From IMG/VR virus record IMGVR_UViG_3300024350_000252, positions 62,001 to 126,000 of that record: a stretch of 64,000 nucleotides of DNA. One strand, given 5' to 3'. Shown piece after piece: positions 3,147 through 63,100 of the stretch. The position numbers and the translations under genes were made by a program. Under the pieces are notes generated by a model. The model searched no databases. It was not told the DNA's origin and saw only the letters and a list, made by a program, of their open reading frames with translations. Each line of letters starts with the position of its first letter. The stretch's first letter is position 1.

Positions 3147-4241
3147 ATGAGAGCAAGTGAATTAAAATTACCGCAGGGAATGGAAGTCTATGTTGACATG
3201 GACGGTGTCCTCGCAGATTTTTTCTCAGAATATGCCAAACTAGCCGGTATCGAATCAGGCAACTACAGAGACATTCCTCCAGCTAAAGCAGATCCAACGT
3301 TAAACAAGATGATAGGCACTGACTTCTTTTATAGATTGCCTAAGTTTCCTACCGCTGACAAACTACTAGATATCGTTGTCGATGCTGCTGGCAGCTATAA
3401 TATCTGTTCAAGCCCTCTCAGAGGCGATCACGAAAATTCCGGTGTACAAAAAAGACGCTGGATAGAAAAACATCTAGCAGTAAAACCTAAAAATATTTTT
3501 ATAGTAGCTAACAAAGCCAAGTACGCAGTCAATGCCAATGGCATGCCTAATGTCTTAATAGATGATAGAGGTAGCAACATTTCATCCTGGGAAGCAGCAG
3601 GCGGTATAGGTATCAAATATCAAGCTGACGAAGATACACTTAAAAAAGTATTAGATGGGTTGAAACGTGCCCGTCGTGTTGGTCAAGGAGAAGAGCCTCA
3701 CGAACCACAACAGCTAATCAGCAAAGATAGAGGCGGCAGCAATGCTATCGCTACTGCCAAAGACGAAAGTATCGAAGAATCAAGAAGATCTGGGTTTTAT
3801 TCTGTACACAAGTTCTTAACAAAATACAATAGATTCGACCCTATAGGCAGTCCTACTAAGTTTTCCGGAAGTGCTGTCGGCAAGACTTTGGACTATCTCA
3901 AACAGACTAACATGCCAGTAAAGGTAACTATCAATGATCATAAAGGTGAATTTGATAGTGTGATTATCGAACCGGGCGATCACGTAAAACGTGCTGTCGA
4001 AAGACTGGGTTTCATAGATGACAGTCCGGATGTAGCATTAGACGTTAAAGAAGTTAGCAAGCAAGGTGTGGCGGAAAACTTTGCTGATGGCAAAGGACCA
4101 GGTCGCCCAGGTGATAGCCAACGCCATGGAATACCTAAAAAAGCCACTATGGCTGAATTAGAAAAAGCCTCACACGCTAAAGGACGTAAAGGACAGCTAG
4201 CCCGTTGGCAAATAAATATGAGACGGGGTAGAAAGAAATGA
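3147..4241 (+). CDS. HAD-family 5'(3')-deoxyribonucleotidase (NT5C-like) fused to two further domains, ending in a basic ENFADGK...RRGRKK module
   Basis: YVDMDGVL (DxDGV) and LIDDR motifs, W...GGIGI; additional ~190 aa C-terminal. Confidence 0.85.
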   Translation: MRASELKLPQGMEVYVDMDGVLADFFSEYAKLAGIESGNYRDIPPAKADPTLNKMIGTDFFYRLPKFPTADKLLDIVVDAAGSYNICSSPLRGDHENSGVQKRRWIEKHLAVKPKNIFIVANKAKYAVNANGMPNVLIDDRGSNISSWEAAGGIGIKYQADEDTLKKVLDGLKRARRVGQGEEPHEPQQLISKDRGGSNAIATAKDESIEESRRSGFYSVHKFLTKYNRFDPIGSPTKFSGSAVGKTLDYLKQTNMPVKVTINDHKGEFDSVIIEPGDHVKRAVERLGFIDDSPDVALDVKEVSKQGVAENFADGKGPGRPGDSQRHGIPKKATMAELEKASHAKGRKGQLARWQINMRRGRKK

Positions 4242-4423: not shown

Positions 4424-4611
4424 AATTAGCAGAACTACTAGCAAAACCATCAAAAATCAAGGAATCTGCTACAGCAGGTGCTACTAGCGCAGGAAATATA
4501 GCGTCTGTAGCCAACCCTAACATAGCTAGATCTAAGAAAAAAGTAAAAACAGCTAATGCCCTTGATACCAAGGACGTAAGCATATTCGGCGGTCCGGCTT
4601 TCAAAAGATAA
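4420..4611 (+). CDS. Small hypothetical protein (MKLAEL...ESATAGATSAGNIASV)
   Basis: ATGA coupling; shared N-terminal motif. Confidence 0.7.
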   Translation: MKLAELLAKPSKIKESATAGATSAGNIASVANPNIARSKKKVKTANALDTKDVSIFGGPAFKR

Positions 4612-4614
4612 ATA
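4608..4614 (+). promoter_or_regulatory. Putative late promoter (ATAAATA)
   Basis: Resembles T4 late consensus TATAAATA; at the start of an intergenic gap upstream of 4674. Confidence 0.5.
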
Positions 4615-5920: not shown

Positions 5921-6535
5921 ATGGCTAGTCTAGAACAAATCCAAGCTGCTTTCCCACATGCTAATCCTAACAGAATAGCTGAACTATATGATGGATTCAT
6001 GGAAGCATTTGAATTGTTTGAAATTAACACACCTTCAAGACAAGCTGCTTTCTTAGCGCAATGCGCACATGAAAGTGGCAACTTTAATGCTATGGTAGAA
6101 AATCTAAATTACTCAGCCGATGGTTTACAAAAGATTTTCCATAAGTATTTTCCAGATTCAGAAATAGCAAGTCAATACGCTCGCAAACCAGAAATGATTG
6201 CCAACAGAGTGTATGCTAACAGAATGGGCAACGGTGACGAAGCCAGCGGAGATGGTTTCCGCTATCGTGGTCGTGGACTGATCCAAGTCACAGGCAAGAA
6301 CAACTACAGAGCCTGTGGTGATGCTCTTGGTGCTGATTTATTATCAGAACCAGATCTATTAGAAACATCCCCAGGCGCAGTACTATCAGCTGGTTGGTTC
6401 TGGGCTGCTAATGGGTTGAATGCCTACGCAGATGCCGGCGACATCCTAACAATGACCAAACGTATCAATGGCGGCACTATTGGTCTAGAAGATCGCAAAA
6501 AGCATTACGAACACGCGATGCACGTTTTGGCATAA
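5921..6535 (+). CDS. Glycoside hydrolase family 19 endolysin
   Basis: AFLAQCAHESG, ENLNY, YANRMGNG, YRGRGLIQVTG, INGG motifs. Confidence 0.93.
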   Translation: MASLEQIQAAFPHANPNRIAELYDGFMEAFELFEINTPSRQAAFLAQCAHESGNFNAMVENLNYSADGLQKIFHKYFPDSEIASQYARKPEMIANRVYANRMGNGDEASGDGFRYRGRGLIQVTGKNNYRACGDALGADLLSEPDLLETSPGAVLSAGWFWAANGLNAYADAGDILTMTKRINGGTIGLEDRKKHYEHAMHVLA

Positions 6536-6594: not shown

Positions 6595-6855
6595 ATGGCT
6601 AAAATTTACGGTCCCGAAGAAAAAGCAAAATTAGAACGTTTAATCGCAGAAGGTTCTAATGTTCTAAGAGAAGTAGAAGACCTACAAGAAGGTCTTAAAG
6701 AAACTGTCAAAGCTGTGGCAGAAGAACTCCAAGTAAAACCCAGCATCATCAACAAAGCTATACGTATCGCTCATAAGGGTAACTGGAAAGACCACGAATC
6801 TGAATGGGAAGAAATCGAAGGCATCCTCGGTGTTACTAAACATTTACCAGAATGA
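6595..6855 (+). CDS. Small dsDNA-binding protein (T4 DsbA / GapR-like)
   Basis: Helical 86 aa with E..DL....KE......AEEL.....IINKAIR pattern; AGGAG RBS. Confidence 0.6.
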   Translation: MAKIYGPEEKAKLERLIAEGSNVLREVEDLQEGLKETVKAVAEELQVKPSIINKAIRIAHKGNWKDHESEWEEIEGILGVTKHLPE

Positions 6856-7142
6856 TAGATCTATTAAAACCCACATTCGATTGGATTAGGGATGACTGGT
6901 CTAGTCATCCTGTCCGCTTTGTGGTGGAGTTGTTTGCTTGGGCTATCAGCATATTTTGTAGTATCACGATGGCAGTCACTGTACCAAACCCGCCTCTTTT
7001 GGCTCTCTACCCTGTTTGGATTACTGGCTGTGCTCTGTATGCTTGGGCTGCTTGGACTAGAAAAAGTTTCGGCATGTTGGCTAACTATATCTTGCTGACC
7101 AGTATCGATACTGTTGGCTTGATAAGAATGCTAACTAATTAA
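6852..7142 (+). CDS. Small 3-TM membrane protein (possible PnuC/SemiSWEET-like half transporter)
   Basis: Three hydrophobic segments; family assignment tentative. Confidence 0.65.
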   Translation: MIDLLKPTFDWIRDDWSSHPVRFVVELFAWAISIFCSITMAVTVPNPPLLALYPVWITGCALYAWAAWTRKSFGMLANYILLTSIDTVGLIRMLTN

Positions 7143-7155
7143 TATAGATTACGGT

Positions 7156-7203
7156 TGATCAGCCATAAATGATCAGTTTGGTATTTGCCAGCCCTAAATG
7201 GCA
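7156..7203 (+). promoter_or_regulatory. Tandem RNA hairpins with matching 8-nt loops abutting the polymerase RBS (putative translational operator)
   Basis: TGATCA-GCCATAAA-TGATCA (7156-7175) and TGCCA-GCCCTAAA-TGGCA (7186-7203); AGGAG at 7205-7209. Confidence 0.7.
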
Positions 7204-7214
7204 TAGGAGAATTG

Positions 7215-9887
7215 ATGAGTTACGTTGACGCTTTGTACAGCAGAGATTCTGATCTTGTAAGTATCGTAGAACGAGATAAAGAAGGTCGCAGACAATATAA
7301 AGAATTTCCTGCTAGATATATTTTCTATTATCCAGATACTAGAGGCAAGTATACCAGTGTGTACGGTGACACACTAAACAGAGTTACTTGTAAGAACCTC
7401 AAAGAATTCCACAAAGAAATAAAGATACACGGTAGCCAACGGCTATTTGAATCCGACATCAATCCTATATTCCGATGCCTAGAAGAAAATTATCTAGGAC
7501 AAGATGCTCCAAAATTGAATGTAGCATTTTTCGACATCGAAGTCGATTTCGATCCTGAACGCGGTTACGCATCGCCTGAAGATGCTTTCATGCCTATCAC
7601 TTCTATCGCTATACATCTACAATGGTTAGATACACTAGTCTGTTTGGCTGTGCCTCCAAAAACGATGTCTATGGCCGAAGCTACAGAAGCTGTTAAAGAA
7701 TTCCCTAATACATATCTCTTCGAAACTGAAGCGGAGATGTTAGACAACTTTCTAACTCTTATTGAAGACGCAGACGTTATCAGTGGTTGGAACAGCGAAG
7801 GATATGATATTCCCTATACTGTTAATCGTGTTACCAAAGCATTAAGCAAAGAAGATACTCGCAGATTCTGCCTTTGGGATCAGTTTCCCAAAAAGCGCGA
7901 ATATGAAAAGTTTGGTAAGACCGCAGTTACATACGACTTCATCGGTCGTGTACATCTAGACAGTCTAGAACTTTATAGAAAATATACCTACGAAGAACGC
8001 CACACCTATAGATTAGATGCTATCGGTGAGATGGAAATCGGAGAAAACAAAACTGTCTATGAAGGCACACTAGATCAATTGTATAACAACGACTTCCGTA
8101 AGTTTATCGAATACAATAGACAAGACTGTGCGTTGTTAGATAAACTTGATAAAAAACTAAAATTTATCGATCTAGCCAATCAGATCGCACATGAAAATAC
8201 TGTGTTGCTACAGACCACTATGGGTGCTGTAGCTGTTACTGAACAGGCTATTATTAACGAAGCACACCGCAGAGGCATGATCGTGCCCAACAGAGCCAAT
8301 AGAGATTCACACGGCGATACACAGGCTGCTGGTGCGTATGTAGCATATCCAAAGAAGGGTATAGCAGAATGGATTGGATCAGTTGACATTAACTCACTGT
8401 ATCCGTCTGCTATTCGTGCTCTAAACATGGGTCCAGAAACAGTGATAGGACAGTTGCGTCCAGATTATACCAAAGCCTATATTGACGAGCAGATGGTACG
8501 TCACGGTAAGTCATTTGCCGCAGCTTGGGAAGGACTTTTCGGAACATTAGAATACGAATTTGTAATGGATCGAAATGTCGCTAAAGAAATCACTATCGAC
8601 TGGGAAAAGGGCGGCAGTGACACGCTCTCAGGAGCCCAAATTAATGATCTCATATTTGATAGCAACCAACCGTGGATGTTGTCAGCTAATGGTACTATCT
8701 TTACATATGAAAAAGAAGGTGTAATACCAGGTCTGCTAAAACGCTGGTATGCTGAACGTAAAGAACTACAGGCCAAATTAAAAGAAAGTATTGCCGCAGG
8801 TAATAAGATTGAAGAAGAATACTGGGACAAACGACAGCTGGTCAAGAAGATTAACTTGAATAGTTTGTATGGTGCTATTCTTAACGTTGGCTGTAGATTC
8901 TTTGATCCGCGCATAGGACAATCTACTACACTCAGTGGTCGTACTATCGTGAAACATATGGCTAGTAAGATCAACGAAATTATTACAGGTGAATATGACT
9001 ACAAGGGCAAAGCTATCATCTACGGCGACACCGACTCTTGTTATTTTTCCGCATACAATGTTCTCAAGAAAGAAATCGAATCTGGTCAGATTCCTTGGAC
9101 TAAAGAAACTGTAATACAGCTATATGATCAGATAGCAGAAGAAACTAATCTTAGCTTTGCTAAGATGATGAACGAAAAATTCCATTGTCCAAAGACACGC
9201 GGCGAAGTCATACGTGCTGGTCGTGAAATCGTAGCATCAAAAGGATTGTTTATTACCAAGAAACGTTATGCTGTTCTTTATTACGACAAGGAAGGCAAAC
9301 GATCTGATGTTGACGGCAAGCCTGGCAAGATCAAAGCTATGGGGCTGGATCTTAAGCGTTCAGATACTCCTGTAATCATTCAGAACTTTCTAAGCGAAGT
9401 ATTAGAAAAAGTTCTTAAAGGTACTGACAGAGATGAAATCCTAAACTTTATCACGGAGTTTAGGACTGAGTTTAAATTAAGACCTGGTTGGGAGAAAGGA
9501 TCGCCCAAGCGAGCCAATAACATAACAGAATATCAAGCCAAAGAAAAGAAAGCAGGCAAAGCTAATATGCCAGGACATGTGCGAGCCAGTATCAATTGGA
9601 ATACTCTCAAACGCATGTATGGTGACAAGTATTCTATGAATATCACCGATGGTGCCAAAGTTATTGTGTGTAAGTTAAAAGAAAATCCCATGGGATATAC
9701 TTCTGTAGCTTATCCGGTAGACGAACTTAGACTACCATCGTGGTTCAAAGAATTACCATTCAATGACGGTGAGATGGAAAATGCCGTCATAGATGAAAAA
9801 CTAGAAAATTTGATCGGTGTGCTAGAGTGGGACATCAGTCAGACTAGAAGCGATAACACCTTTAACTCGCTTTTTGATTTTGAATAA
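7215..9887 (+). CDS. Family B DNA polymerase (T4 gp43-like)
   Basis: Exo motifs FDIE, WNSEGYD, YNRQD; Pol motifs DINSLYPS, KxxLNSLYG, YGDTDS; start moved to ATG 7215 behind AGGAG. Confidence 0.97.
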   Translation: MSYVDALYSRDSDLVSIVERDKEGRRQYKEFPARYIFYYPDTRGKYTSVYGDTLNRVTCKNLKEFHKEIKIHGSQRLFESDINPIFRCLEENYLGQDAPKLNVAFFDIEVDFDPERGYASPEDAFMPITSIAIHLQWLDTLVCLAVPPKTMSMAEATEAVKEFPNTYLFETEAEMLDNFLTLIEDADVISGWNSEGYDIPYTVNRVTKALSKEDTRRFCLWDQFPKKREYEKFGKTAVTYDFIGRVHLDSLELYRKYTYEERHTYRLDAIGEMEIGENKTVYEGTLDQLYNNDFRKFIEYNRQDCALLDKLDKKLKFIDLANQIAHENTVLLQTTMGAVAVTEQAIINEAHRRGMIVPNRANRDSHGDTQAAGAYVAYPKKGIAEWIGSVDINSLYPSAIRALNMGPETVIGQLRPDYTKAYIDEQMVRHGKSFAAAWEGLFGTLEYEFVMDRNVAKEITIDWEKGGSDTLSGAQINDLIFDSNQPWMLSANGTIFTYEKEGVIPGLLKRWYAERKELQAKLKESIAAGNKIEEEYWDKRQLVKKINLNSLYGAILNVGCRFFDPRIGQSTTLSGRTIVKHMASKINEIITGEYDYKGKAIIYGDTDSCYFSAYNVLKKEIESGQIPWTKETVIQLYDQIAEETNLSFAKMMNEKFHCPKTRGEVIRAGREIVASKGLFITKKRYAVLYYDKEGKRSDVDGKPGKIKAMGLDLKRSDTPVIIQNFLSEVLEKVLKGTDRDEILNFITEFRTEFKLRPGWEKGSPKRANNITEYQAKEKKAGKANMPGHVRASINWNTLKRMYGDKYSMNITDGAKVIVCKLKENPMGYTSVAYPVDELRLPSWFKELPFNDGEMENAVIDEKLENLIGVLEWDISQTRSDNTFNSLFDFE

Positions 9888-9894
9888 ATTTCAC

Positions 9895-9923
9895 TTGACA
9901 TTTACTCACGATCTAAATAAAAT
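9895..9923 (+). promoter_or_regulatory. sigma70-type promoter TTGACA-N17-TAAAAT
   Basis: Consensus -35, 17-nt spacer, near-consensus -10 in intergenic gap; CTAAATA (late-like) overlaps the -10. Confidence 0.8.
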
Positions 9924-9946: not shown

Positions 9947-10684
9947 ATGAAGGACATTTTACAAGACATCGTAAGCCATACACAGAACCTAGGATTCCTA
10001 ACTACTGTTAAGGTTACGGGCACAGAAGAAAGCACAACTTTCTTTTCTATGGCAGAAGATCGTTCAGTGATCATGGATGCCAATACACACAATCCATATC
10101 CTGATATGATTGGTACTTTTGGTATGCCTCAACTACAAAAGTTGAAGTATCTGCTAGATGGATCAGAATACAAAGAAGATGCTAAGATCAATATTTTCAA
10201 AGCAGAACGCAACGGCGAGACCCTGCCAGTAGGCATCCACTTTGAAAATAAAGATGGCGACTTCAAGAACGACTATCGTTTTATGAGCATGGAAGCTGTA
10301 AACGAAAAGCTAAAGAATGTTAAGTTCCGTGGCGTTGCTTGGCACGTAGAATTAGAACCCAGTGTGGCAGCAGTGGCTCGTTTCAATTTCCAAGCAGGTG
10401 CTCATAGCGAACATCCAACATTCTTGGCCAAGACAGAAAACAACAATCTAAAGTTTATCTTCGGTGATGCTAGCACACACGGTGGTGAATTTGTTTTTGC
10501 TACCGATGTCGTAGGTACGTTGAACAAGGGTTGGACTTGGCCAGTGTTGCCAGTACTAAGCATCTTGAAGATTGCTGATGTTAATAATACCAAGATGAAA
10601 CTTTCCAACGAAGGTGCTATCGAAATCACACTAGACAGCGGGTTGACTACTTACAGGTATATCATTCCAGCACAGGCGTCTTGA
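9947..10684 (+). CDS. Probable DNA polymerase sliding clamp (gp45-like)
   Basis: 245 aa alpha/beta pattern typical of clamps, ending in a beta-strand ...YRYIIPA; directly downstream of the polymerase. Confidence 0.6.
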   Translation: MKDILQDIVSHTQNLGFLTTVKVTGTEESTTFFSMAEDRSVIMDANTHNPYPDMIGTFGMPQLQKLKYLLDGSEYKEDAKINIFKAERNGETLPVGIHFENKDGDFKNDYRFMSMEAVNEKLKNVKFRGVAWHVELEPSVAAVARFNFQAGAHSEHPTFLAKTENNNLKFIFGDASTHGGEFVFATDVVGTLNKGWTWPVLPVLSILKIADVNNTKMKLSNEGAIEITLDSGLTTYRYIIPAQAS

Positions 10685-23547: not shown

Positions 23548-23554
23548 ATAAATA
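23548..23554 (+). promoter_or_regulatory. Putative late promoter (ATAAATA)
   Basis: Intergenic; same heptamer as other gaps. Confidence 0.5.
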
Positions 23555-24262: not shown

Positions 24263-24282
24263 ACATAGGATTTAAATATATC

Positions 24283-60144: not shown

Positions 60145-63100
60145 TTAAATGCTCGTGCTAGTTACGATCGACGACGTTGTAAGTTTAAGATCTGAAGCTG
60201 TTATATTAGTTAGTATATCAATGGTATCCACAGTTACAGCACTGACTAACAGTTCATCGGGTTTACTTTGTATTTCTAAAAGACTGCCAAATGCCTGCGT
60301 TGTTTGTACAGGAACTATTACCATGTTGCTGATGTCTGGTGAATTTTCTTTAACCACATATGTGATTAACTCACTTGCGTGGAATCTATCACCAAAATCA
60401 AAATTCTGTACATCAAAGAAATCAGAAATAGCATTGACAATTCTAACTTTAAGATCATTATCGTTGATACTTCTGTTAGGATTTTTTACAACCTTAATCC
60501 TTGCTTGGAATTCTGCTCTTGCCTTAGATCCAAATAACGGAAAATAGCTCACAGGATGATATACTATTTCGTCACTGATAGCCTTGATAGGAGCTAGATT
60601 ATTACCAAATTCTACTCTTAAAGCTTCTGCGGTCGGTGCTTGTGGCTCTGTAGCGATAGCACCTTTCAACCAAAGTCTATAGTTGTTGTCGTAATTTCTT
60701 GTCAATAGATAAACATCAATGATATTGGTCACAGAAGGATCTATTCTTCTTCCTTCACCAGAAGTGTGAATATACTGGAACTTTAAATCGCTGCGTCCTA
60801 CATATCCCACATACGAAGGTTCTAAAATAAAGGTATTGGTTACCAAATCTACTCGCTTGACAAAATTTTCTAACTGATCATAAAAATATATCAATTGATT
60901 GTGAGCATAATCATTTACTGCTGTATTAGCTTCTTTGTCTCGTACCAATATGTAATCGTTCTTGTTTGGCACAAACACGTAAGTTTTAGCACCAAATTCA
61001 TCAACATCCTCTTTAAAGAATACATATTTGGTAGTATTATTGGTTCCCACTATTTCATCAAAAGCATCAGGATTATCTATGACTCCGTCATCGTTAGAAT
61101 CAATAAAACTGATCTTGATCGAGTCATTGGCTTGATATCCATCATCATAGCGCACACTATCCGAAACAGTAAATGAAACGTCTTCTTTGATAGTCTGTTT
61201 AGAATCAACTATAGATAATACATCAGCAAGAGTAAACTGAGGTTTATTAGTCTTTAAAGCTAGGATAGCATTAGCCACTTCTAATGATCCTACATTCAAT
61301 GCCACCGGTGCTGTGTTTACTGATAATACCTTGACAGCATCTTTGATAACTGTTCTTGTTTTGCTATCATAGATTTTTTGATTCTTATCAAAATAAAATC
61401 TATTTTGTTCAACACTGGTGAAAACATAATCTGTTCCTCTCAGTCTTACTTTGTAAGTTTCACCATCAAAAATAAATGCTATCAACCAAGAAGCATCTAG
61501 GCTCTTGTTGGTAGAATCGCCTGCTTGACCTAGATTAAAATTACTAGTTTGATCTATGTTACTAGCTGTTACTATCGCCCAAGAATTGGTTGTTCTTACA
61601 TATCTTATACCAAAAGTTTGATTTAGGAAACAGAGGTTGATTATTTCTGATTCTATATCGCTGGTAAATTTATTATCAAATTTAGGAACTACCTGCGATG
61701 GTACAGCACCTGTAGGAATAACCGAGCTGACTGTAATCGGGCCTCTGCCTGTTGATAAATTACCTTTACCTGCGTTTGTGCCATCACCTACAACCTGTAC
61801 AACTTTGGCCCAGATATATGTCTTATGATCAGTATTCATGGGATCATAATCAACGACTTTGCCTTTGTAAAATGCTTTCGTGCTGCTAGGTGGTACAAAT
61901 TTAATTAGAGCATTTACTGTTAGATATTTTAAGTTACTGGTAGTATAAGATCCTACACGTATAGGAAAACTGTCAAATGCGTTGCCAAAATAACCCGTAC
62001 TTGATCCAGTATCTGCTGTGCTCTGTAACCATTTAACGTTAACGTCTGAAAGGAAAATTTTATCAAAGTTAGTAAGATAAAAATTATAAGTTTGAAAATC
62101 AGCTACTGCTGGTTCTATGACATCCTTGATATAATTCAACAAAATAGTTTTATTAGAAAGTGTAAAACTAAAAGTTCTTTCGTTGTCATATCGATAGATG
62201 ATTCCGTCGTCGGCAAATACATTTACACCACTGTACTTTCCGCTAGCATCAATGATATCAAAATTCCTGCTTATACCGCTGCTACTTCTGTTGATCGATT
62301 TTACCTTGAGAATATCTTGGCTGCTAGATAGCGGAGCTAGATTATAATCTTCTCCTGTGATCATTCTATTCTGTGTATAATAGACAGCAGGAGCATTAGC
62401 ACGGATAGTGTCCATGTCTTCAGATGCGGCGCTGTTATCCACGCTGTAATAGAGGCTACAGGTCACTGTCAAGGTTTCAGCAGTACCTCTAGAACTAGTA
62501 TAAGGAATTGATAAAGTTACTCCTCGTAATTCGTTAGGAGAAATAATATATCTTAAACCATTGCTGACTCTATAATAAATCTTAAAAGAACCTCTAGGCA
62601 AATTGCCATACACACCGTCAGCAAATAAAAGATCTACCTGATCATTATTTTTTGTAATAGCAGAATAGATATTCTTGACGCCGTTGCTAACACTATTATA
62701 AACAATATTGTTGCCTGTCAAAGAAGAAACCTGTGTCCATTTTTCTCCTTGATTTCCTGCGGCATCGACAGCATATAGCCAAAGGTCATCATTGTTAATA
62801 CCATTGGTAGTGATATTGATTATTTCGTTAACTGTCGGCTGTGTGATCGTAAAATCAGCCGTAGTCATGCTACCTTGCTTGAACAGTAAGAAAAATCCAG
62901 TATTGCTGCTAGCATTACCTTTTCCGTCTTGTCTGTAGACAAAACCTAACTTATTGCCCGGAATAGGATCTTCTTCATAGATATAATCTTTTCCGATTAT
63001 GCTAGTACTAACCAATTCAAAATTCATAGAACGGCCGCCTGCTACCTTACTAAAAGTATAGATAGGAACCCCGGTATTTGAAGCATTAAATCTGTACTGA

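Follow-up and report, generated by a model that had tools for sequence, protein, structure and literature searches.

Introduction

Autogenous translational control of a replicative DNA polymerase is a classic but narrowly documented mechanism, and it is known from the bacteriophages T4, RB69 and RB49. In these phages the gp43 polymerase represses its own translation through a leader hairpin lying next to or overlapping the ribosome binding site, the loop of which carries -UAAC- or -UAAA-, and the 3' AC/AA bases of the loop matter for binding (PMC3014915). The T4 hairpin was reportedly the target of the first SELEX experiment. However, some T4-related polymerases do not autoregulate, and there is no evidence that the T4 gene 43 operator forms a pseudoknot (PMC3014915). 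In contrast, T4 gene 32, encoding the single-strand DNA binding protein, has a small H-type pseudoknot in its mRNA leader, which serves as a recognition or nucleation site for translational autoregulation (PMC3014915); it is single, lies far upstream of the RBS and is followed by an unstructured AU-rich tract that the protein coats cooperatively.

Tandem hairpins with near-identical conserved loops on unrelated stems just upstream of an RBS are also found in the E. coli thrS operator, in which two stem-loops mimicking the tRNA-Thr anticodon arm are bound by dimeric ThrRS, and in the guanidine-II (mini-ykkC) riboswitch. In addition, small H-type pseudoknots of about 26-34 nt with an A-rich third loop (L3) occur as aptamers and frameshift elements, such as the preQ1-I riboswitch and BWYV-type pseudoknots. 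This paper describes two small hairpins in front of the DNA polymerase gene of a giant phage, which belong to a previously undescribed RNA element of two tandem mini-pseudoknots, and compares them with these systems.

The leader of polB in the window

The stretch of DNA analysed, hereafter the window, comprises 64,000 nucleotides, namely positions 62,001 to 126,000 of the IMG/VR record IMGVR_UViG_3300024350_000252. A first-pass annotation, made from the sequence alone, had described two hairpins with near-identical 8-nt loops on different stems in front of a DNA polymerase gene and proposed that they are a duplicated, possibly cooperative, autogenous operator with the loop sequence GCCMUAAA. 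The observation is correct, since both hairpins, the Shine-Dalgarno (SD) sequence and the start codon are present where they had been placed (Table 1). The downstream ORF is a family-B DNA polymerase (PF00136 and PF03104), whose best solved relative is RB69 gp43 (E 2e-62 over residues 21-835). A TTG at 7185, which is given as the start in a program-made ORF list, is an artefact, because homologues start at the position of 7215, where the conserved N-terminus MSYVDA aligns.

Table 1. Features of the polB leader, in window coordinates
Feature	Position	Strand	Composition
AT-rich box, candidate T4-late-type promoter -10 element	7136-7147	+	TAATTAATATAG; overlaps the stop codon of the upstream ORF
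Unit 1, first mini-pseudoknot	7153-7175	+	S1 5' strand GGU 7153-7155; L1 U7156; S2 5' strand GAUCA 7157-7161; S1 3' strand GCC 7162-7164; L3 AUAAA 7165-7169; S2 3' strand UGAUC 7170-7174; T7156-A7175 could add a sixth pair in the plain-hairpin form
Hairpin 1 as DNA	7156-7175	+	TGATCA 7156-7161; GCCATAAA 7162-7169; TGATCA 7170-7175
Linker between the units	7176-7179	+	GUUU
Unit 2, second, SD-proximal mini-pseudoknot	7180-7203	+	S1 5' strand GGU 7180-7182; L1 AUU 7183-7185; S2 5' strand UGCCA 7186-7190; S1 3' strand GCC 7191-7193; L3 CUAAA 7194-7198; S2 3' strand UGGCA 7199-7203
Hairpin 2 as DNA	7186-7203	+	TGCCA 7186-7190; GCCCTAAA 7191-7198; TGGCA 7199-7203
Spacer	7204	+	T
Shine-Dalgarno sequence	7205-7209	+	AGGAG, 1 nt after unit 2
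Start codon of polB	7215-7217	+	ATG
polB, T4/RB69 gp43-type replicative family-B DNA polymerase	7215-9887	+	890 aa; the gene that the element is inferred to control and the candidate repressor

Within this single sequence the feature is no more than chance. The motif GCCMTAAA occurs 4 times in the window against 3.9 expected, and the 86-nt leader folds no better than shuffled sequences (z = -0.71). The minimum free energy structure does not even contain hairpin 1, and the long-range pairing that it shows instead, between the 3' arm of hairpin 1 and the SD/AUG region, was rejected because it is not conserved in relatives. The evidence that the feature is real is comparative, consisting of conservation, covariation and uniqueness.

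Conservation and covariation among related phages

About 160 distinct leaders from uncultured jumbo phages, whose polymerases are 62-100% identical, keep both units. Of 80 IMG/VR loci selected by polB (78-100% identical), 79 carry both units at the same place, and the exception, locus L079, keeps unit 2 only. A pattern scan for unit 2 returned 116 matches, of which about 108 are twin elements directly before a polB start and 5 more have a small ORF inserted between the element and a coupled polB. Part of the sequence set was collected with patterns that fix unit-2 bases, so that the invariance of unit 2 in those sets is by construction, and the polB-selected set is the unbiased one. Unit 2 is also kept in locus L122, where unit 1 is lost, and in both L079 and L122 a terminator-like hairpin precedes unit 2, which shows read-through or a different 5' end there. 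Conservation of the hairpins upstream of homologous polymerases had been set beforehand as a test of the operator hypothesis, and this test was passed.

RNAalifold and pair counts gave both stems as 97-100% paired, with double changes in 8-9 of 10 pairs, and 0 of 500 shuffles reached the score. In unit 1 all five S2 pairs show double compensatory changes, with 21 different inner stems, and in unit 2 three to four of the five S2 pairs covary, with 14 stem variants. G.U pairs occur but A.C pairs do not, so the sense-strand RNA is the folded molecule. The linker between the units is conserved neither in sequence nor in length (3-7 nt). An AGGAG or GGAG core lies 0-5 nt (mode 1) after the unit-2 stem in 140 of 144 unique leaders. 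Among the 113 leaders in which the start could be scored, 72 use ATG and 41 use the weak TTG, that is, about 36%.

The element occurs once per genome and always heads the polymerase gene or operon. Covariance models of the twin element and of a single unit hit only the polB leader in the 238-kb genome to which the window belongs, and the same holds in 978 kb of related loci, with one hit per true locus, and in five other large records including a complete 372-kb genome; weak hits with E >= 0.05 were judged to be noise. However, more distant relatives of polB lack the element: none was found in the nearest cultured relatives examined, Phosso (polB 50% identical), Atu_ph07 (46%), PA5oct, 121Q and a Vibrio jumbo phage. 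A scan of positions 6900-7400 against Rfam 15 at E <= 10 gave only two sub-threshold chance hits, of 16-18 bits against gathering thresholds of 43-50, so no described RNA family, including preQ1-I and guanidine-II, matches. A scan for sigma-70 promoters and intrinsic terminators showed nothing above the shuffle expectation at the element, and no T-run follows either hairpin.

Each unit as an H-type pseudoknot

The loops need to be reinterpreted, because they are not free 8-nt protein-recognition loops as had been supposed. Each hairpin is preceded, 1-3 nt 5' of the stem, by a conserved GGU that pairs with the first three loop bases (GCC), and RNAalifold itself chose this pairing. In unit 1 the S1 pairs are G:C in 90 and A:U in 2 cases for one position and U.G in 73 and C:G in 12 for another, and the sister clade has AGU:ACU and GGU:ACC. 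In unit 2 the outer S1 pair is G:C or A:U and the inner pair is U.G or U:A. There are no mismatched S1 intermediates among true elements. The sister clade has AGU with GCU, or AGU with ACU; the AGU...GCU form was found upstream of polB in 15 loci, whereas database scans for the two single-change forms found no true element, that is, 0 of 69 for AGU...GCC and 0 of 52 for GGU...GCU. Two members of the sequence set, L223 and L020, support pairing within a unit rather than between units.

The 72-nt gap between the upstream ORF and polB is filled by a conserved structured leader RNA made of two tandem copies of one unit of about 26 nt. Each unit reads R-G-Y, a linker of 1-3 nt, a stem of 4-6 bp of free sequence and a loop that begins R-C-Y and continues N-N-A-A-R, and is therefore a small H-type pseudoknot with S1 of 3 bp, L1 of 1-3 nt, S2 of 4-6 bp, no L2 and an A-rich L3 of 5 nt, the two helices being in crossing topology and each supported by covariation. 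These loop lengths are sterically compatible with such a fold, judged from general pseudoknot geometry (L1 of at least 1 nt across S2 and L3 of at least 2-3 nt across S1). The loop consensus GCCMUAAA of the first-pass annotation is too narrow, because that of the family is GCC-A-Y-A-A-N for unit 1 and GCC-N-N-A-A-R for unit 2.

Comparison with described systems

Like the gp43 operators, the element lies in the 5' leader of a homologous T4/RB69-type polymerase gene next to its ribosome binding site, is specific to one gene, and has short stems of about 5 bp; the T4 hairpin is AGCCU/AAUAACUC/GGGCU and that of RB49 is CUUUC/GUAAAU/GAAGG, with loops of 6-8 nt. The 3' half of the loop is A-rich in both, UAAC or UAAA against NNAAR here; the loops in the window end in UAAA and the AA is invariant in the family, but loop positions 4-5 vary and the first three bases are paired in a pseudoknot; a resemblance of 2-4 nt could be chance. 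On the other hand, there are two tandem units instead of one, each is a pseudoknot, and unit 2 is closer to the SD (0-5 nt against 7 nt in T4). The T4 and RB49 leaders, read directly, each have one hairpin and no GGU...GCC arrangement, and the element shares no alignable sequence with the T4, RB69 or RB49 operators. Moreover, binding and repression are demonstrated for T4, RB69 and RB49, while here they are only inferred.

The T4 gene 32 pseudoknot resembles the units in being a small H-type pseudoknot in the leader of a phage replication gene, but it controls the SSB gene and not the polymerase, whereas here two pseudoknots lie directly at the SD without a long unstructured tract. Compared with the thrS operator and the guanidine-II riboswitch, the loops here are 8 nt long and partly consumed by a pseudoknot helix, they carry no ACGR tetraloop or anticodon-like loop, and there is no loop-loop complementarity between the units; the Rfam scan found neither family. 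The preQ1-I and BWYV-type pseudoknots share the size, the crossing two-helix topology and an A-rich L3 that could lie in the minor groove of S1, but the order and size of the helices differ, no ligand is known for the present element, and it is not inside a coding region.

Possible function of the element

The anatomy of the leader described above, the two units, their stems and their pseudoknot helices next to the SD, is established by comparative analysis, while its function, including binding by the polymerase, repression and cooperativity, is inferred. The interpretation of the first-pass annotation is thus partly supported: a gene-specific operator next to the SD fits the conservation and exclusivity of the element, but the loops have to be read differently. 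The most likely explanation, to which a probability of roughly 0.5 may be given, is a gene-specific translational operator, in which a trans-acting factor would bind the folded twin pseudoknots with a footprint reaching the adjacent SD, block 30S binding and so limit polymerase synthesis. The factor is most likely the polymerase itself when it is not engaged on primer-template DNA, by analogy with gp43 of T4, RB69 and RB49. In this view the duplication would provide two sites, with higher affinity or cooperativity, and the SD-proximal unit would be the essential one, because it alone survives in lineages that lost unit 1. However, the pseudoknot explains the conserved loop bases without any protein, which removes the main argument of the first-pass annotation for protein recognition, and the SD is not inside the structure, so the RNA alone cannot sequester it.

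Other explanations are less likely but are not excluded. A purely cis-acting role, in which two compact pseudoknots at the 5' end of the transcript would protect it from 5'-end-dependent decay or act as a ribosome standby or enhancer site, is unlikely; RNA folding alone explains all the conserved bases, the SD stays free, and the promoter-like box upstream of unit 1 means that the element may be the very 5' end of the mRNA, but stabilizing hairpins do not normally need a conserved tertiary fold or duplication, there is no obvious reason why polB alone out of about 230 genes should need one, and the read-through or different 5' end in L079 and L122 speaks against it. It is similarly unlikely that the twin pseudoknots are an operator for another protein, such as another replisome component, ribosomal protein S1 or a dedicated repressor, acting on polB translation or mRNA decay. 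The same anatomical evidence fits this reading, and nothing identifies the binding partner computationally, but a general regulator should have several targets, and no second copy of even a single unit exists in the six large genomes searched. In addition, no RegA homologue was detected and RegA sites are unstructured (PMC3014915), and the neighbouring genes vary between lineages while the link to polB does not.

A tandem small-molecule riboswitch, with each mini-pseudoknot as an aptamer comparable in size to preQ1-I and stabilized by a metabolite relevant to replication, such as a nucleotide or nucleobase derivative, so that the stabilized fold next to the SD would modulate initiation, is also doubtful, although the A-rich L3, the near-invariant junction bases, the tandem duplication, which would give a steeper response, the position at the RBS and the marginal stability of the stems on their own agree with it. 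If true, it would be a new tandem riboswitch class among the smallest known aptamers, by which a phage would couple synthesis of its replicative polymerase directly to a small metabolite such as a nucleotide-pool signal, without a protein repressor. Against this, no alternative, mutually exclusive pairing or expression platform is conserved, the SD lies outside the fold, Rfam gives no match, loop positions 4-5 of unit 2 vary freely, and riboswitch classes usually serve several genes, whereas this element serves one gene in one phage clade. Moreover, no QueC or TGT/DpdA genes suggesting a 7-deazaguanine ligand were found in the genome, which is only 67% complete, so a preQ-type ligand has no support. 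Finally, a DNA-level signal such as an inverted-repeat protein binding site, an origin or a promoter element, or a chance pair of palindromes, is strongly disfavoured: TGATCA is a DNA palindrome and the motif is not unusual in the single sequence, but the arms change freely while staying complementary with G.U but no A.C pairs, which marks a folded sense-strand RNA rather than a sequence-specific duplex site, the third helix has a crossing topology, about 160 distinct homologous copies exclude chance, and no sigma-70 promoter or terminator signal rises above background.

A large, uncultured clade of freshwater jumbo phages with genomes up to about 370 kb has a dedicated structured leader on the same gene as in T4, but the RNA solution is different and more elaborate, namely duplicated H-type pseudoknots. 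The alignment of about 160 natural variants, with covariation in three helices per pair of units, is enough to define a new RNA family and to design disruptive and compensatory mutants, and the finding makes it testable whether polymerase-RNA autoregulation is an ancient, recurrent trait of T4-type replisomes or whether the RNA senses something else.

The upstream promoter-like box

The AT-rich box in the window is an imperfect, degenerate counterpart of a TAA(A/G)TA box lying 15-20 nt upstream of the unit-1 GGY in about 110 of 142 unique leaders; its role as a promoter is putative. Metatranscriptome contigs of all four RNA runs break at 7176-7211, because co-occurring strains share the conserved element and the loose ends carry other variants of it, so these breaks give no information on the transcription start. 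The same box precedes many genes of this genome with much shorter leaders: 55 of 92 TAAATA copies lie in the 7% of the genome that is noncoding, mostly 10-40 nt before a start codon. A gp55-like ORF is also present.

The polymerase leader and its genome

The sequence of the leader reads exactly as described in the first-pass annotation, that is, the observation of two hairpins standing in front of the ribosome binding site of a DNA polymerase gene is correct. The ORF following the hairpins is a family-B DNA polymerase (PF00136 and PF03104), and its best solved relative is RB69 gp43, which is aligned almost end to end (E 2e-62). ORF prediction extends this gene to an upstream TTG, which would give a protein of 900 aa and run through the second hairpin, but this longer ORF is not the gene because all homologues begin at the MSYVDA position. 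Taken alone, however, the feature is not beyond chance: the loop word GCCMTAAA occurs 4 times in the window against 3.9 expected, the leader folds no better than shuffled sequences (z = -0.71), and the minimum free energy structure does not even contain hairpin 1.

The window lies in a 238-kb IMG/VR viral record, about 67% complete, from river metagenomes. No cultured phage has a polymerase more than 50% identical, the nearest being those of Sinorhizobium phage Phosso, Agrobacterium phage Atu_ph07, 121Q-like Escherichia phages and PA5oct-like Pseudomonas phages.

Coordinates of the leader, its surroundings and related features (window positions unless a record is named; G000 is the record of the window's own genome, L numbers are loci of relatives and G003 is the record of locus L115)
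Feature	Position	Strand
NT5C-like 5'-nucleotidase gene	3147-4241	
Glycoside hydrolase 19 / chitinase-like protein gene, possibly a lysin	5921-6535	
T4 DsbA-like late-transcription DNA-binding protein gene	6595-6855	
96-aa hydrophobic ORF	6852-7142	
Hairpin 1, TGATCA / GCCATAAA / TGATCA	7156-7175	
Branch point of metatranscriptome contigs	7176-7211	
TTG-initiated extension of the polymerase ORF (rejected)	7185-7214	
Hairpin 2, TGCCA / GCCCTAAA / TGGCA	7186-7203	
Shine-Dalgarno AGGAG	7205-7209	
ATG start codon of polB	7215	
polB	7215-9887	
245-aa ORF (phrog_12062)	9947-10684	
TAAATA copies	4609-4614, 9914-9919, 23549-23554, 24273-24278	+
TAAATA copies	35892, 45316, 63679	-
gp55-like late sigma ORF, outside the window	G000:C1:131841-132062	
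Terminator-like hairpin region replacing unit 1, with unit 2 kept	L079:2921-3008	
Terminator-like hairpin region replacing unit 1, with unit 2 kept	L122:85-172	-
Weak twin-model hit	G003:C1:7509-7580	

Conservation and covariation of the two stems

A protein-guided scan of IMG/VR returned 80 loci with polB 78-100% identical, and in 79 of them both hairpins stand at the same place upstream of the start codon, so the condition that the hairpins be conserved before homologous polymerases, which had been set beforehand as a test, is satisfied. The exception, the locus L079, keeps only the Shine-Dalgarno (SD)-proximal one. In addition, a DNA pattern for unit 2, the SD-proximal hairpin with its flank, returned 116 matches, of which about 108 are twin elements directly before an ORF starting MSYVDA, MSFVDA or MYVDA, six are obvious chance hits without a stem, and five (L095, L103, L104, L124 and L183) have a small extra ORF of about 55-204 aa between the element and a polB whose start abuts or overlaps it. 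This ORF is Cys-rich and of 61-63 aa in L103, L104 and L124, of 204 aa in L183 and of about 55 aa in L095, and an inserted ORF was also seen in L281 and L261/L324. In these relatives the element heads a two-gene, probably translationally coupled, operon, and the Cys-rich ORF has a poor Shine-Dalgarno. Together these searches give 144 unique leader sequences.

In the unbiased, polB-selected alignment (A1), RNAalifold recovers hairpin 2, and three of its pairs change on both sides in 6-35 of 59 sequences. Hairpin 1 exists in two registers, a 5-6 bp form and a GCG(N)G/CCGC form with a bulge, and explicit parsing finds a stem of at least 4 bp in 142 of 144 leaders, with 21 different inner stems. 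In two further alignments, A2 and A3, 9 and 8 of the 10 stem pairs, respectively, show double changes. Although the sequences gathered with the unit-2 pattern have GGTATTTG, GCC and AA fixed by construction, the polB-selected set shows the same invariance. G.U pairs occur and A.C pairs do not, so the folded molecule is the sense-strand RNA.

Pairing in the leader alignments, counted over the stems plus the GGU:GCC helix
Alignment	Sequences	Cells paired	Shuffle expectation	Shuffles reaching the score
A2	49	99%	85%	0 of 500
A3, covariance-model alignment	94	98%	81%	0 of 500

The pseudoknot

Both hairpins are preceded, 1-3 nt upstream, by a conserved GGU, and RNAalifold chose the pairing GGU:GCC over stem 1. 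When units 1 and 2 are aligned together, they fall into one register, NN-GGY-(N)NN-stem-GCC-NNAAN-stem, and the element is therefore a tandem duplication of one unit. The three-pair helix between RGY and the first three loop bases varies only in compensated ways: unit 1 of the main clade has G:C 90 and A:U 2, and U.G 73 and C:G 12, the few "unpaired" cells being one-column alignment shifts, while unit 2 has U.G or U:A. IMG/VR was then scanned for unit-2 variants of the outer pair, the presence of polB alongside was checked by tblastn and the true elements were examined.

Unit-2 variants of the outer S1 pair in IMG/VR
Variant	Type of change	Raw hits	With polB alongside
AGU...GCU	double change, compensated	at least 120	15 (polB 62-67% identical; 2 further loci carry only an unrelated ~28%-identical polymerase)
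AGU...GCC	single change, A.C mismatch	69	0
GGU...GCU	single change, G.U wobble	52	0

In the sister clade with AGU...GCU, unit 1 reads AGU-N-stem-ACU..., and in the locus L223 it reads GGU...ACC, which is fully complementary again. L223 and the locus L020 also show that each RGY pairs with its own loop, not with that of the neighbour, and L079 and L122 agree with this because they lost unit 1 but kept the GGU of unit 2. In L079 and L122, unit 1 is replaced by a longer GC/AT hairpin followed by a T-run, which is terminator-like, suggesting that unit 2 is the essential unit and that upstream transcription is insulated there. Consequently, each unit is, as comparative sequence data show, a ~26-nt H-type pseudoknot with S1 of 3 bp, L1 of 1-3 nt, S2 of 4-6 bp, no L2 and an L3 of sequence NNAAR. 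The A-rich L3 is where such folds usually make minor-groove contacts, so contacts of this kind may be supposed here by analogy.

Exclusivity of the element

Covariance models of the twin element (R1) and of a single unit (R2) were used to search for further copies, and in every search the element was found only in the polB leader. A weak twin-model hit (18.2 bits, E 0.05) lies far from polB in G003, but the single-unit model does not confirm it, so it is probably noise. Furthermore, Rfam 15 has no matching family, and the leaders of the more distant polymerases of PA5oct, Phosso, Atu_ph07, 121Q and a Vibrio jumbo phage do not contain the element.

Covariance-model searches for the element
Model	Searched	Result
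Twin model R1	Own 238-kb genome, and the window with filters off	One hit, 77.7 bits, E about 1e-17
Twin model R1	978 kb of related loci	Exactly one hit in each of the 94 true loci
Twin model R1	Five other large records, including a complete 372-kb genome with terminal repeats	One strong hit in each
Single-unit model R2	Own genome	Only the two polB units, E 1.8e-6 and 5.2e-5, nothing else up to E = 10
Single-unit model R2	The same five large records	Only the polB-leader units are significant

Possible function

The analysis demonstrates a conserved, covarying and gene-exclusive twin pseudoknot RNA abutting the polB ribosome binding site, whereas its function, including binding by the polymerase and repression of translation, is inferred. 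The SD is outside the fold and no alternative pairing is conserved, so the RNA by itself cannot hide the SD, and a trans factor whose footprint reaches the SD would be the simplest way to regulate. The homologous polymerases of T4, RB69 and RB49 repress their own translation by binding a leader hairpin at or near the RBS, and their loops are UAAC or UAAA, in which the 3' AC/AA bases matter (PMC3014915); the T4 and RB49 leaders were also read directly. Autogenous repression by polB is therefore ranked first, with a probability of about 0.5. The interpretation in the first-pass annotation, an autogenous translational operator, is thus partly supported, although its argument that conserved loops imply protein contacts is weakened by the pseudoknot.

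The pseudoknot raises the weight of a role in cis only and of a small-ligand riboswitch, but both are rated much less likely than autogenous repression, as is an operator for another protein. The riboswitch idea has no support from Rfam or from a search for 7-deazaguanine pathway genes. A general regulator is unlikely because no second target was found in the window's genome and the five large records, and a search for a RegA homologue found none. A DNA-level signal or chance is essentially excluded.

The element sits like the gp43 operator and, on the inferred mechanism, would work like it. It fails the criterion of homology, however, since it shares no sequence with that operator and has two units and a pseudoknot. 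In the literature searched, no description of such an element was found. What is new is a structured RNA motif family in an uncultured jumbo-phage clade, with a well-founded but unproven regulatory role, while autogenous control of a polymerase through its leader is already known from T4, RB69 and RB49.

Surroundings of the element

An AGGAG or GGAG core lies 0-5 nt after unit 2 in 140 of 144 leaders, and 41 of the 113 scorable starts, about 36%, are TTG at the true start position. On the other side, a TAA(A/G)TA box lies 15-20 nt 5' of unit 1 in about 110 of 142 leaders, whatever the upstream gene, and an A two bases before the GGY is nearly invariant. The window's own box is imperfect (TAATTAATATAG). 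In the window's genome TAAATA is strongly concentrated in intergenic DNA, that is, 55 of 92 copies lie in the 7% that is noncoding, mostly 10-40 nt before start codons, and it resembles the T4 late promoter TATAAATA. In addition, a gp55-like ORF exists and a DsbA-like gene lies just upstream. The box is therefore probably a T4-late-type promoter and, if so, polB has an unusually long leader consisting almost entirely of the twin element.

Metatranscriptome contigs cover the region, but the contigs of four riverine runs all end or start at the element, and their loose ends carry other variants of it. This is an assembly-graph branch caused by the sharing of the conserved element among co-occurring strains, not a transcript end, and no 5' end was obtained from these contigs. 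The assembler word depth upstream of the element is about 1.5-2.5 times that over polB.

The last two of the four upstream genes, encoding the DsbA-like protein and the hydrophobic ORF, overlap by 4 nt. The 245-aa ORF just downstream of polB (phrog_12062, function unknown) is conserved next to polB in relatives. In Sinorhizobium phage Phosso, a similarly sized sliding-clamp gene lies two genes after polB, so a clamp is no more than a possible identity for this ORF by analogy.
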